Shown here piece by piece: positions 47,421-54,405 of a stretch of DNA of 64,000 nt. The notes beneath the pieces are model-generated. The model worked only from the letters and a program-made list of their open reading frames with translations, did no database searches and was not told the DNA's origin. Location of the stretch: assembly GCA_002104945.1 (NCBI GenBank), contig MCFH01000007.1:1178001-1242000 (forward strand). The letters are read 5' to 3'. The position numbers were made by a program, and so were the translations under genes. How positions within the stretch are numbered: position 1 is the stretch's first letter; each line of letters starts with the position of its first letter. This DNA is from Piromyces finnis finn. Taxonomy: Eukaryota; Fungi; Neocallimastigomycota.

Positions 47421-50400
47421 ATGAGTTTTGGTGGACATTCATACAATTTTGATGTATTTAATACCAATCAAAAGAATAAAAATGGATTTAGTTATTCTAA
47501 AAGGTCTCCTTTTCAAAGGATAGATAATATGGATATTGATATACCTTCAAAAAATGAAAATTCTTTTCCATATCAATTCAATTCAATGAATACAAATTAC
47601 CAAAATTTTCATCCTAATAATCCCTTTCAAAAAGAAATTCATCCTTTGAGTTTTCAAAATTCCTCAAATTATATAAAAACTAACACAGTATTTAATTCAG
47701 AAAATAAATCAAACAACCAATTTCATTTTTCAAAAAATACTGAAACTCAGAACTTCTCAATTATTTCCAATAAAAATAATAATTCAAATTTCTCAACAAA
47801 TAAACGTATTAAATTTTCAATTGATAAATCCACAAGTTCTTTTCCAAACTCATTAAATTGGAATTTTCAAAAGCAAAGACAAGACAATATTAAGGATACA
47901 TTTAAAACACCAGCAAGTCTGAATTCTAATTTTCAAAGAAATAATTCAAGTGTTAGTAAATTTAACATTTACACTATCAATAGACAAAATGATATTCTCT
48001 CTTCAAATAAATCATTAGAACATTCATTTTTAATAAGGCAACAGGAGCGTATAGCTATAAGAGAAAATAATAATAGCAATGGTAATTATATATACAATAG
48101 TAGTAATTTCAAAATACAATTAATAATAGGTTAATATTTATTCTAATATTCAATTTTATATAAGTTATTCAGAAATTTTCATATATAAATTATATTTTGA
48201 AAAAAATAAAAAATATATTAAATATACCACTAAAATTACGTAAGTTATATATAATACAATTTTAAATGTTTATTATACAAAACCATAACTAAAAAATATA
48301 AATATTTAAAAATTATATTTAATCAAAGTTAATCTATCTTTAAATATTAATTGGAGTTTAATATTTGCTATTATTGTGACGACTTTAATATTTTATTTAA
48401 ATGATAGTCCAGGAATGATTATAAAGAAATTTTTACAGCAATATAATATTAATTTTAAAAGTGAAAATTTTATAAATATAGGAATTACTTTTTTATTAAT
48501 AATAATATTTTGTAAGTATTATTAATATGTGATATTTATTAAACATATTAATTACTGATATTAACTATATTAATTGTTCATATACTTCTTAGGGAGTCAG
48601 GGAAAAAAAATATTAAATTCTACAATAAATTATATATTAGTAATAACAGTTGGAGTTTTTATTATTAACACTCTATTTATAAAGCCAAGTATAATTTATA
48701 ATTTCGATAATAATAATAAAAATCTATTAAATATTGATAAAAGTAGTGATTTATTGAATTTAAATTTAAAGACATACAATGAATATTTTAGTAAGTTGAA
48801 TTTTAAATTCATACATTTAGTTTATTAATTATTTTGTTTTATTATTATTATAAAATATTAATCTTATTTTATGAATTTCATTATTTGTTAATAATAGATA
48901 ATTTTATTCATAATAACTATATCAGTAGTTTAATTGATTTCATAATTTACAAACCAATAAGAAGAAATGAAGATAGAAGAAAAATAAAGAATATAGAAAA
49001 AAAGTTATTAAAATTTGAAAATAATATCAAAATTATAAAAAGTCGTCTTAATTATAAATCAAATAGAATTCATGAAATTTCGAAAATTCATGAAGATAAT
49101 AAAAACTCATTTGAGATTATTAATTACTATCTAACTATTTATGAAAATATATTTAAATATAATTCCTTACATTTGGAACAACAAAAAGCCATATTAAAAC
49201 AAATTGAGAATAATTTTAATTATCAGTTTGAAAACATTATAAATACAAGAAAAAAACTAGATAATCTTTCAAAGAAAATTGATGATTTATTTTCCAAATC
49301 CAGAAACATGCTCAATAATGAAATTGGTAATGTCGAAGAAGATAAAATATCTTTTATTGAAAATTACATAAGAGAACTGGATAATTTATTTCCTCCACAA
49401 ATTTTAATTACTTGGAATCAAAATAATAACGAAATTGAGTTTTCGACTGATCTTTATAATACTATTGGTCAGCGCTATTTCTCAAAAAAGGTAAAAAAAA
49501 AATGATTTCAAAATAAAAAATAATAATAATAATGATAATAATAATACCGAAACTTATTATTAATATATTATAACTATTATTTATTATTATTTATTGTCTT
49601 TGTTATTAACTGTTGTTGTTTTTATTACTTTTTTAAATAGGATTATAATAAACATTTCAATGTACAATATCCAATTGCTCCTACCCTTCCATTAAAAGAG
49701 TTTTTATGGAAAAATAAAGAATTAGTTGAAGATTTAATGTTAAAAAATTTTAATACGTATACTAGCAAGAAATCGGAAATAATAATTCAATTAAAAGAAA
49801 ATATTGATTATTTTCGAAAACAATTTAAAAACAATGAAAATATCATATTGAGTTCTATAGACAAAAATGAATTTTTAAATTCAATTAAATCTTTTATTAT
49901 TTCAGATGTAAAAAATAGAATTAAAGAAAAAGAAAGAAATCATTCATTACAAAAATATAATCAATATTCAACTCATTCTATTCCTGATTATTCAACTGCT
50001 TTATATGGAGCATCCATAATTGAATCATTAACCACCAAAACTCAACCAATTACTAGTGAAAATCATATGATTAATAGATTGCACATTATTAATAATCCAC
50101 CACTTTTAGCATTAGAAAATTCATTATTACCAAATAGCTGTTGGGCAATGAAAGGTATTTTAATAATATTTGATTTAAGCACTTTTTTTTTTTTTCCTAT
50201 AATCATTTAATTTTCTTATATATGCATTTATATAATATTCTGATCTTTTCTAATTAAAATTTTATATACAGGAACAAGCGGTTCAATAGGTATTGAACTT
50301 TCACATTTTATATATCCAACATCCATTACAATTGAACATTTACCATCATGGAATACACGAGATCCAATGTCTGCTCCAAGATCAATGACGCTTGTTGCAA

Positions 50401-50804
50401 TTTCAGGAAGTCAAAACGTTCTAAAAAAAATAGATAGTAATAGAATAAAGAATATTAATGAAATTAAAAGCAGCAGCAACAACAATAATATTAATAATCA
50501 GTTTTTAAACCAAAATGAAGAAATAGAAAACCATAAAATAAATATTAAACAATATTTAAAAAAAGTTGAATTTCCATTAATATTAGGTACATTTCAATAT
50601 AATATAAGTGGACCCCAATCCTCACAAACATTTCCATTAAATCAAAATGCAATAAATCGACTTAAACTTTATGACACGAAAATAAATAAAGTTCAACTTC
50701 AAATACATAATAATTGGGGTAATGAAAATTACACATGTATATATAGAATTCGGATACATGGTGATGAACCTCAAACGTCACAATCACCATTAATGCCATT
50801 ATAA
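47421..50804 (+). CDS. SUN-domain nuclear envelope protein (Sad1/UNC-84 type)
   Basis: Low-complexity N-terminus, hydrophobic segments (about 48350-48680), coiled-coil region. C-terminal SUN motifs PDYSTALYGASII, PNSCWAMKGTSGSIGI, ITIEHLP, SAPR, LGTFQY, NNWGNENYTCIYRIRIHG split over GT-AG introns. Confidence 0.92.
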
Positions 50805-51030
50805 TTTTACCATTTTACTATAATCCATTTTTGGCTTTAATTATTTAAATAAAATTGGATATTTAAAAAGAAAAATATAAAAAAATAAAAAATAAATAAA
50901 TAAATAAAAATAATATTTTTTATAATATTTTGATATTTTTAAAATTTTATAATTTTACATTATTCTTTAAATAATTTATATTTTACTTTATTTTTTTTTT
51001 TTTTTTTTTTAGCTTTTAATCCATATATAT

Positions 51031-51072
51031 TTTGTTTGTTTGTTTTGTTTTGTTTTGTTTTGTTTTGTTTTG

Positions 51073-51103
<31 letters not shown>

Positions 51104-51104
51104 T
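51031..51104. repeat. (TTTG)/(TTTTG)n microsatellite
   Basis: Tandem units between the convergent 3' ends of the SUN and AKTIP-like genes. Confidence 0.9.
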
Positions 51105-51381
51105 AATTTTTGACTTTGTCTTTAATTAGTTAGTACTTAATATTTTATAAAAGGAAATTTATAAAATTGTTATGTTATATATTCTATACAGTATTACAAA
51201 ATATCCTTCCATAATAATATTATTATAAGTGAATTTATTATCATTTAAATATATATATTCCATTATTAAATATTGAAAAGAAAAAATTTTTTTTTCGATT
51301 TTTGAAAAAATGAGGATTTATAACAATAAAGATAAATATTATTTTCTACCATCAATAGCACATTTAAAACGATAAACAATT

Positions 51382-52847
51382 TCATCTATATTTGTTCTTT
51401 CATCTAAAATTGACATATCGTTCTAAAATTATATATATATATATAATCATTAAGATTTTCTATTTGTGTGTTTGAAAATATTTATAACAAAATAAAATAA
51501 AATAAAAACTTACATAAATTTCTAAAATTTGTTTCTTGTTCTTCTCAAATTGCTCATCATTTATTTTTTGAAACTTGATAGATTCACTTGTTGGATTGTT
51601 TTCATATAAAACTTCATCGGAAATAGAATTATCAACACAATCCTTTACAAGCTTTAGGAAAAATTCTTGATTATTATTATATCTAAAAATAATTTAAATC
51701 GAATTTAAAAATACATTTTAATCTTCTTAAAATATCTAATATATTAAAAAAAAAAAAAAAAAATTACGTTTCCCAAGCATGTTGATTTGAAATCTTATCA
51801 CTTTGAAATTCTAAAAATGTTCCTTCGTTACTTAAAGCATCATTTAAAACATAAAGTAACTTTAAAACAGAATGTTTAATATTAATGCTTTTGTTATATA
51901 TTGGATTGAAATAACCAACTTTATTGACTAATGGATGATAAATATGTGTGTTAAACTGAATAACAGGATTAGCATTTCTATCCGTATTTATATTGAATCA
52001 CATAATTAAAATTAAAGGTTAAGGCAACTAAATATTTTATATAACTTATTTAATATATTACAATGTTAATAAAAAATATGAAAAGGATATTCAGAGAATC
52101 TAACATTGAACTTAAATACACCTCCTTTGTAAAAACCTTCGTGAATGAATATTACACCTACCCATTCTATTAAATAATAAATCCATATAATTTTAATTAT
52201 TAAAAATTGTATTATTTTAATTAAATTCTAATAATTAATATTGAATATAATAATATAATTTGAAGAAGAAAAAGAAAGAAAGCTTATTTACTGTAAATAT
52301 CATTTGATTGATAAATAAAAATATTTTTACATTTTAAATTTGTTAAATTTTTTCTATTAATTAAGATTATGTGAAAATAGTGAAAAGTTTTTAAATATAA
52401 TAAAATAACATTAGTACATTTTTATACTTTAATTGAATTTTTATGAAAAAAAAAAAATAATAATAACAATTTAAATTTAATAATATATATTTTAAATAAT
52501 AATATTTCGTTATATTTATGTTTAATGAAAAACTTACAATTCCATTAAAATGTCATTTCTTCTAATTAAATTAGTAAAAGTTGTTTCATTATTATTGTTT
52601 CCATGAACAATAGTTCCTGAAATTGTTCTTGGTGGAGGTGGTGGTGAATTTAATTGTAAATTATTCTGTAATTATTTAATTATTTTTTAACATATTAAAA
52701 TGTAAAAATTAATAATATTATTAATTGTGTTATTAGTATATAATGTTTAAACCTTTATTTTATAATTTTTTAAGAAATATTATAGTAATTATCATAAGAA
52801 TTATAAAATAAAAAAAAATAATAAAATAAAAAATAAATTACATTCAT
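51382..52847 (-). CDS. AKTIP/FTS-like ubiquitin E2 variant (no catalytic Cys)
   Basis: Exons 52842-52847 (6 nt, tentative), 52538-52665, 52292-52353, 52091-52166, 51768-51983, 51514-51682, 51382-51422. Translation includes KWVGVIFIHEGFYKGGVFKFNV and PVIQFNTHIYHPLVNKVGYF; no Cys follows the HP motif, as in AKTIP/FTS. Confidence 0.8.
51984..52090 (-). other. U12-type (minor spliceosome) AT-AC intron, 107 nt
   Basis: Starts ATATCCTTTT (52090-52081), contains branch site CCTTAAC (52024-52018), ends TAC at 51984. Removal gives in-frame TCT GA|G GAT AGA AAT; retention hits TAA. Confidence 0.88.
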
Positions 52848-53503
52848 GGTTATTTAACCTTTCTTCCAATATCAATATTTCTTACTATATTAATGTTTCA
52901 AAGGTTTTCCAAAATAATTTAATTTAATATCAATAAAATGTTTATAAAATTATTACTAATTATTACTATATAATAATAAGAGTTATTACAAGCTGATTGT
53001 TATAATATACAATTTATTATTATTTAAATTTATTTTTGTTGTTATTTATTGTTTTTTTTTTTAATTTGTTATTGTTTTGATTGCTTTTTTTTATTATTAT
53101 TTTATAATTTTTGTTGTAAAATAAAAAATAAAAATTAAATATTATTTTTTATACTCTAAAATTATTTAATATTAAATTTTATTAATTATTAAATTTAAAA
53201 ATTTTGTTTTATTTTTTTAAAAATTATTAAGTTTGTGTTACATTAAAGTATATCATTAACACCAAATTTGAAAATTTAGATTTATACTACTTTTCAATTC
53301 TATAACAAAATAACTATTTCTATCTTCCATTCCATCTAAAGTATATAATAATAAAATAACAATAATCTTATAATAGTTACATTATATTATTAATTAAAAT
53401 TATCTATTTATCTATTTAATCATAAGCCCCCATTTTAATAATAAAATTATCAATGAACAGTATGATTTTTTTCATAGTAAAACTATAGTTTAACTAATTT
53501 TCA

Positions 53504-53506
<3 letters not shown>

Positions 53507-53562
<56 letters not shown>
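53507..53562. repeat. (ATT)n microsatellite
   Basis: About 18 tandem ATT units, intergenic. Confidence 0.9.
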
Positions 53563-53563
<1 letters not shown>

Positions 53564-54405
53564 TTTAACTATTCATTTTATAATATAATAGTCATCATAG
53601 AATCAATATTTTTAATTTTTTAAACTACTATATAAAAGTAATAATTATAAATTCTATTTTGATATAATATTTAATATGTTTTAATCATAATATCTTTCTT
53701 TGGTAAATATAAAATATTAATAATCCATTAAAAAGTATCCTATATTCTTTATTTATTGAAAAGAAAATTATAAATTAGTTTTTATAATAAGCATATTTTC
53801 TAAGAGCTACTCATTAATATATATAAAATGTAATAATTTATATTTTTTCTAATTTCATTTTCATAATTAATTTTTTCTACTTATGATTTTATAAAAATGA
53901 AAGATTTTTTTCCACAAAAATTAAAGGTTTAGATTTTAATATTTAAAACCTTTCTTGTTTTTATTTTATTAATATTTTACTAATTTTTATTTATAATATA
54001 TCATATTTTTATTTCATTATTTATATTTTTAATGAATATATATTTAAATAAAATAAAATTATTGCCATTAGCTTAACACATTTCTTATATAAAAAAGATA
54101 TTTTTTTATTAATAATATTTATTATACTATTGTTACTCAAATCTAACCTTTTGTGTAACTATTTATTGAATTTATATTTTTTAAATCAAAATAAATAAAA
54201 AAAATTATTAAATAAATATGTATATATGTAAATCTTTTTATTTACATTTACATATAGATTAAATGGGTATATTAAAAAGATTACTTAATATTATTACTTT
54301 TTAAAATAAAAGTTTTGATAAATTACTACAAGATTAATAATTTAATTACAAAAATATGATATATTTTAAAAAAAATGTTTTTTTTGCATATTACTTTTTC
54401 CTATT

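Follow-up and report, generated by a model that had tools for sequence, protein, structure and literature searches.

An AT-AC intron with U12-type signals and a distant branch motif in the AKTIP/FTS-like gene of the anaerobic gut fungus Piromyces finnis

The AKTIP/FTS-like locus

The region described here is a window of 64,000 nucleotides (the whole stretch of DNA that was analysed) from the Piromyces finnis scaffold MCFH01000007.1 (GCA_002104945.1), in which position x of the window corresponds to record position 1178000 + x and the GC content is 20.5%. The initial annotation, which was made from the letters alone, had guessed at an anaerobic gut fungus as the source, and P. finnis is such an organism. 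The minus strand of the window carries the coding sequence of an AKTIP/FTS-like E2-variant protein of 246 amino acids (51339..52847; BCR36DRAFT_409885), which was delimited from transcript pieces, translation, identity to the public protein model P0011 and the locus range. Transcript contigs place its seven coding exons at 52847-52842, 52665-52538, 52353-52292, 52166-52091, 51983-51768, 51682-51514 and 51422-51339, all on the minus strand. The fourth and fifth of these exons are separated by an intron with AT-AC ends (51984..52090), which is the subject of this report. Apart from it, the gene has six introns, all of the ordinary GT-AG kind, with the donors GTAAGT, GTAAAT or GTAATT. Those within the coding region of the minus strand lie at 52666..52841 (GTAATT..ACAG), 51683..51767 (GTAATT..TTAG) and 51423..51513 (GTAAGT..TTAG), as seen in transcript contigs and the sequence, and at 52354..52537 (GTAAGT..ATAG) and 52167..52291 (GTAAAT..ATAG), as seen at contig joints and in the sequence. 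In addition, the contigs run upstream of 52884 on the minus strand into a 5′-UTR exon at about 52990-53020 (...CAGCTT|GTAATA), which implies a 5′-UTR intron of about 105 nt between 52885 and approximately 52990, the position of its donor being approximate.

The gene lies tail-to-tail with a SUN-domain gene (Sad1/UNC, 902 amino acids), whose last exon is found on the plus strand at 50367-50804. The 3′ flank of the AKTIP-like gene holds a pentanucleotide repeat, (CAAAA/AAAAC)n, beside a poly-A run at 51020-51110, and upstream of the gene, at 53500-53575, there is a long (TAA)n microsatellite; both simple repeats are ordinary for the P. finnis genome. Look-ups of two neighbouring ORFs were without a match. 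The window also holds an intronless peptidase ORF.

Identity of the encoded protein

AKTIP, also known as FTS (Fused-toes), is the E2-variant subunit of the FTS-Hook-FHIP complex. When an exon piece of the P. finnis gene was compared with 1.84 billion proteins, three matches were obtained, and one of them, P0001, became the full-length reference for the later searches. The exons flanking the AT-AC intron match the Pfam family UQ_con weakly but collinearly, over profile positions 30-53 and 61-80, and PF00179 (the UBC/E2 fold) is precomputed for P0011. The best solved-structure match to a profile of the gut-fungal proteins is an AKT-interacting protein (8qat_D, E 8.1e-9), behind which the best active E2 follows at E 2e-6, and the same profile also finds an acoel "AKT-interacting protein-like" sequence at E 3e-8. 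The P. finnis protein shares with AKTIP/FTS the UBC fold and the HPLV motif together with the lack of the E2 active-site cysteine: the stretch HPLVNKVGYFNPIYNKSINIKHSV is free of cysteine, the E2 active-site position that follows HPLV is not occupied by a cysteine, and the first conserved cysteine downstream of this motif is C178. The AKTIP-like identity proposed initially is upheld by the structure match and the missing catalytic cysteine, which support the label "AKTIP/FTS-like E2 variant". One difference lies directly behind the intron site, where the (D/E)-Y-P motif has been lost from the gut-fungal proteins: they read SE|DRNANP versus E|YPEYPP in Gigaspora. A Logan transcript contig (P0014, 252 amino acids from a 1.1-kb transcript-derived sequence) encodes a protein 49% identical to that of P. 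finnis, with the gut-fungal form of this loop (FSEHQK, lacking the Y-P motif); it may stem from a gut-fungal lineage that branches deeply or from a paralogous gene.

Excision of the AT-AC intron from transcripts

The AT-AC intron is 107 nt long and lies in phase 2, splitting glutamate codon 91 as GA|G. The exon upstream of it (...KWVGVIFIHEGFYKGGVFKFNVRFS, minus strand) ends with GA at 52092-52091, and reading on past 52091 gives E-Y-P-F-H-I-F-Y followed by an in-frame TAA at 52066..52068 (SEYPFHIFY*), so that intron retention would end the protein after nine extra codons. No GT donor occurs in the sequence between the exon end and this stop, in agreement with the original observation that the exon runs into a stop with no good GT donor. 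Joining 52091 to 51983 gives GA+G, a glutamate codon, and continues the frame into DRNANPVIQF...HPLV, also as first described.

RNA data bearing the gene were found in four runs from three studies, and their contigs were aligned to positions 51100-53000. Contigs from all four runs skip exactly 51984-52090 and join 52091 to 51983, the very junction at which splicing had been predicted. The boundaries of the skipped segment read GT..AT on the plus strand, which is AT..AC on the strand of the gene, and the junction is unambiguous, as its two sides have no letters in common. Contig depth within 51984-52090 is zero, and no intron-retaining form was seen in the contigs of the four runs. Every other intron of the gene is also missing from these contigs, which identifies them as spliced mRNA. 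The AT-AC intron is therefore excised precisely in vivo.

An artefactual skip, whether from template switching of the reverse transcriptase, from a join made by the assembler or from a deletion variant of the genome, is given next to no credence here. It would draw on the fact that the evidence consists of assembled contigs rather than raw reads and that the kind of the runs (labelled "RNA?") is a guess, but contigs from which all introns are completely gone speak for cDNA despite the guessed label. The identical junction recurs in four runs of three studies, and the absence of shared letters on its two sides leaves no repeat for template switching. Moreover, an independent transcript contig from Anaeromyces (L005) has the homologous join and encodes exactly the AT-AC-spliced protein, the join brings back a conserved protein fold, and both its position and its signals are conserved across genera.

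A second way of splicing this region, from a weak GT at 52111/52110 to the AG at 51979/51978, had been named beside retention as an outcome that would speak against the AT-AC intron. It would keep the frame and delete FNVRFSEDR, and no contig has such a form. The GT in question is made up of the G of an AAG at 52111 and the T at 52110, which corrects the earlier description.

U12-type signals in the intron

The defining signals of U12-type introns are a 5′ splice site /ATATCCTT and a branch-point sequence like TCCTTAAC (PMC3584512). Both are present in the P. finnis intron. Its 5′ splice site, ATATCCTTTT (52081..52090, minus strand), contains the U12 consensus /ATATCCTT without deviation and is invariant in five gut-fungal orthologues and Gigaspora. 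The branch-site motif CCTTAAC (52018..52024, minus strand; context TTGCCTTAACC) is nearly perfect, GCCTTAAC at 52025-52018 differing from the branch consensus at one of eight positions. The candidate branch adenosine is that at 52020 or 52019, and the intron ends in an AC at 51984..51985, the first AC or AG 3′ of the branch motif, 34 nt past CCTTAAC and after a spacer that holds neither dinucleotide. The initial annotation had placed this AC at the same distance, with no AG between, and every motif it had listed was found again in the sequence.

By themselves, sequence statistics prove little for this intron. In the window, with its GC content of 20.5%, ATATCCTT occurs five times against 6.7 expected and CCTTAAC five times against 3.8 expected, so that each motif singly is at chance frequency and the sequence argument rests on their co-occurrence where the reading frame needs an intron. 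The joint chance of finding both motifs at the needed place is roughly 1e-7, an estimate from the observed motif rates. The tail of the intron is A/T-rich, as are all introns in a genome of 20% GC, so that the presence or absence of a polypyrimidine tract before the 3′ end does not discriminate here. Other U12 introns in the window were sought among the remaining matches to [AG]TATCCTT and dismissed, as these are antisense to ORFs, lie within a coding ORF or have no branch motif.

U12-type AT-AC introns reportedly occur in animals, plants and early-diverging fungi, in work associated with Hall and Padgett and with Tarn and Steitz. The P. finnis intron is like them in its /ATATCCTT donor, its TCCTTAAC-like branch motif and its terminal AC, as well as in its non-0 phase, its deep positional conservation and its precise excision. 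It differs in the placement of its branch motif, which is 35 nt away from the 3′ end instead of the usual 11-13 nt or so.

Conservation in gut fungi and beyond

Orthologous loci were compared from Piromyces sp. E2, Anaeromyces robustus, Neocallimastix lanati and N. californiae (two loci). The comparison of position and phase that had been proposed at the outset places the AT-AC intron in the same glutamate codon and in phase 2 at six loci of five Neocallimastigomycota genomes, and likewise in the glomeromycete Gigaspora rosea. All of these orthologous gut-fungal loci have GA|ATATCCTTTT, a branch motif of the form CCTTAAC or C(C/T)TTTAAC and a terminal AC. The remainder of the intron has diverged among these orthologues, and the CCTTAAC-type motif is the only block of the intron body that is conserved across genera.

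The Gigaspora intron (positions 1683-1781 of locus L010, QKWP01000671.1) has the codon and phase of the P. finnis intron and reads ...ATT GA|ATATCCTTTTTTT...AATGCCTTAACATTTTTTCTAATAC|A TAT CCA GAG.... It begins with ATATCCTTTT and contains GCCTTAAC, followed by 14 more nucleotides up to the terminal AC, and by these letters it is a textbook U12 AT-AC intron. As the same intron occurs in Gigaspora, it predates the gut fungi and is common at least to them and Glomeromycotina. Both the Gigaspora intron and the exon after it start with ATATCC, so that a direct repeat of 6 nt spans the intron.

Other relatives differ at this site. The chytrid Cladochytrium replicatum has no intron there, one further relative is intronless as judged by its length, and the acoel AKTIP-like gene lacks an intron at the P. 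finnis AT-AC codon and has a GT-AG intron eight codons downstream. A scan of metagenomes gave four loci without an intron at the site, one with an intron elsewhere and one (L016) with a GT-AG intron at the AT-AC position and phase. This last intron (L016:~260-355; contig Ga0302312_10067444, GC 0.58) lies in an AKTIP-like gene that reads GAG AC|GTATTTGG...TTGTTAG|A TTT CCC, within the codon before [YF]-P, and has the codon position and phase of the fungal U12 intron; it may have arisen by conversion of a U12 intron, or the agreement may be coincidental.

An origin of the intron from coding sequence, by intronization or splice-site capture of ancestral E-Y-P-F codons, was also considered, since the read-through E-Y-P-F falls exactly where relatives have (D/E)-Y-P. 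This idea is refuted by Gigaspora, where the same AT-AC intron is present and the Y-P is encoded by the exon that follows, and it is further weakened by the fact that any phase-2 AT-AC intron reads x-Y-P.

Taken with the transcripts, the conserved position and the two conserved signals, from gut-fungal genera to G. rosea, identify 52090..51984 (minus strand) as an old U12-dependent AT-AC intron in phase 2 of glutamate codon 91 of the AKTIP/FTS-like gene, a reading to which a probability of roughly 0.9 is assigned.

Rare AT-AC introns of the U2 type exist, and the P. finnis intron might be removed by the major (U2-dependent) spliceosome. Such a possibility is in keeping with the six ordinary GT-AG introns of the same gene and with the finding that terminal dinucleotides alone do not set the class of an intron (PMC3584512). 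It is nevertheless very improbable, as the 5′ site is a perfect ATATCCTTT rather than a U1-type consensus and the U12 branch motif is conserved in five gut-fungal genomes and Gigaspora. Minor snRNAs are, in addition, reported for P. finnis in the text of a published survey (PMC10639083).

Spacing between the branch motif and the 3′ end

Within the U12-dependent reading, the distant branch signal is the one feature that stands out. The optimal distance from a U12 branch site to the 3′ splice site is 11-13 nt, and this distance has been called an important factor in recognition (PMC3584512). Measured from the second A of the branch motif (52019 in P. finnis) to the intron end, the distance was found to be 35 nt in P. 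finnis, 34 nt in both Piromyces sp. E2 and A. robustus, 42 nt in N. lanati and 52 nt in N. californiae, while G. rosea has 15 nt. The P. finnis value is about three times the optimum, and the gut-fungal range is 34-52 nt. Since the orthologous Gigaspora intron has 15 nt, the lengthening of the spacer took place in the lineage of the gut fungi.

Either the splicing machinery of these fungi is relaxed in this respect or the real branch lies elsewhere. In the latter case, the intron would still be of the U12 type, with a lariat adenosine about 10-20 nt from the AC, and CCTTAAC would be a docking or recognition element for U12 or conserved for another reason. The conflict between a spacing of 34-52 nt and the 11-13 nt optimum (PMC3584512) speaks for a branch of this kind, and the A/T-rich tails offer many adenosines that might serve. 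It is nonetheless unlikely, because no closer branch-like motif with an A 8-25 nt from the 3′ end has fewer than 3-4 mismatches in eight positions in any gut-fungal orthologue, the tails are not conserved between genera whereas CCTTAAC is, and Gigaspora has the same motif at the canonical distance of 15 nt.

With CCTTAAC retained as the branch signal, the spacers themselves give some indication of how the 3′ end may be chosen. They contain one AC or AG, where the frequency of these dinucleotides in the bodies of the introns would predict about 6.3. The Poisson probability of this depletion is estimated to be near 0.01, and as the sequences are related, it is merely suggestive. Four of the five copies in the comparison use the first AC or AG past the motif, and such use over a relaxed distance fits a scanning-like choice. 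It is accordingly proposed, tentatively and at somewhat less than even odds, that the gut-fungal minor spliceosome has relaxed the spacing to 34-52 nt and takes the first downstream AC or AG by a scanning-like rule. A hairpin that would shorten the spacer was tried as another solution and rejected, as the tails fold at -0.2 to -3.1 kcal/mol, mostly no better than shuffled sequence. No discussion of branch-to-3′-end spacing in gut fungi was found in the main-text portions of the two published surveys of minor introns that cover these organisms (PMC10639083; PMC11347168).

Proposed course of splicing

The steps of U12-dependent splicing as described for animals and plants (PMC3584512) suggest, by analogy, how the P. 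finnis intron may be removed. The U11/U12 di-snRNP would bind ATATCCTT and CCTTAAC together, after which U6atac would take the place of U11 on the 5′ splice site. The lariat would then form on an A of CCTTAAC, and the first AC downstream would be used as the 3′ site in the second step.

A scan of the 64-kb window with Rfam gave no match to any family, minor snRNA genes included. For the organism as a whole, the text of Larue and Roy reports both minor introns and minor snRNAs in Neocallimastigomycetes including P. finnis (Larue and Roy, 2023; PMC10639083), and 129 minor introns are given for N. californiae in that of Olthof et al. (2024; PMC11347168). As far as these texts go, the published sets concern the same organisms and the same class of introns and reach the same conclusion, with which the retention of a working minor spliceosome in P. 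finnis, as supposed in the initial annotation, agrees.

Public gene models

Gene callers restricted to GT-AG introns had been expected to mis-annotate this gene, which is not the case in P. finnis itself and holds for some of its relatives. The spliced product of 246 amino acids is letter-for-letter identical to the public P. finnis model P0011 (hypothetical protein BCR36DRAFT_409885), so the public annotation is already right and includes the AT-AC intron.

The public Gigaspora model P0016, by comparison, splices GTGAAG..CCAGAG (L010 1696-1791), 13 nt downstream, and inserts one extra residue. Scored with the family HMM, the AT-AC reading of the Gigaspora gene reaches 125.4 bits versus 117.4 bits for the public GT-AG model, an advantage of 8 bits, and it brings back the family spacing P-x-x-Y-P-x-x-x-P. 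On this comparison of sequences, the public G. rosea model mis-splices the AT-AC intron. In N. californiae, the model LY90DRAFT_702200 (L003:1755-1908, MCOG01000082.1) joins ...GAATAT to AAA... and reads S-E-Y-K, which corresponds to AT..AG boundaries with a shift of 2 nt. AT-AC boundaries at the same locus (1755-1904) would give S-E-D-K, and the nearest transcript-derived relative, P0004, has SEDR; the junction of this model is therefore probably mis-modelled. The error in Gigaspora and the probable one in N. californiae mark places where callers biased towards GT-AG still fail.

Significance

The retention of a minor spliceosome in these fungi is not new, having been published in 2023-2024, and the intron described here leaves the picture of minor-spliceosome distribution unchanged. 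No paper naming the AKTIP-like gene as a host of a minor intron was found. The intron adds one more transcript-verified U12 intron, at a position common to Neocallimastigomycota and Glomeromycotina. An intron that is orthologous in both groups but spaced at 15 nt in Gigaspora and at 34-52 nt in the gut fungi makes the rigidity of U12 spacing testable, and the stretched spacer, dated by the comparison with Gigaspora, is the point that could merit a genome-wide look.
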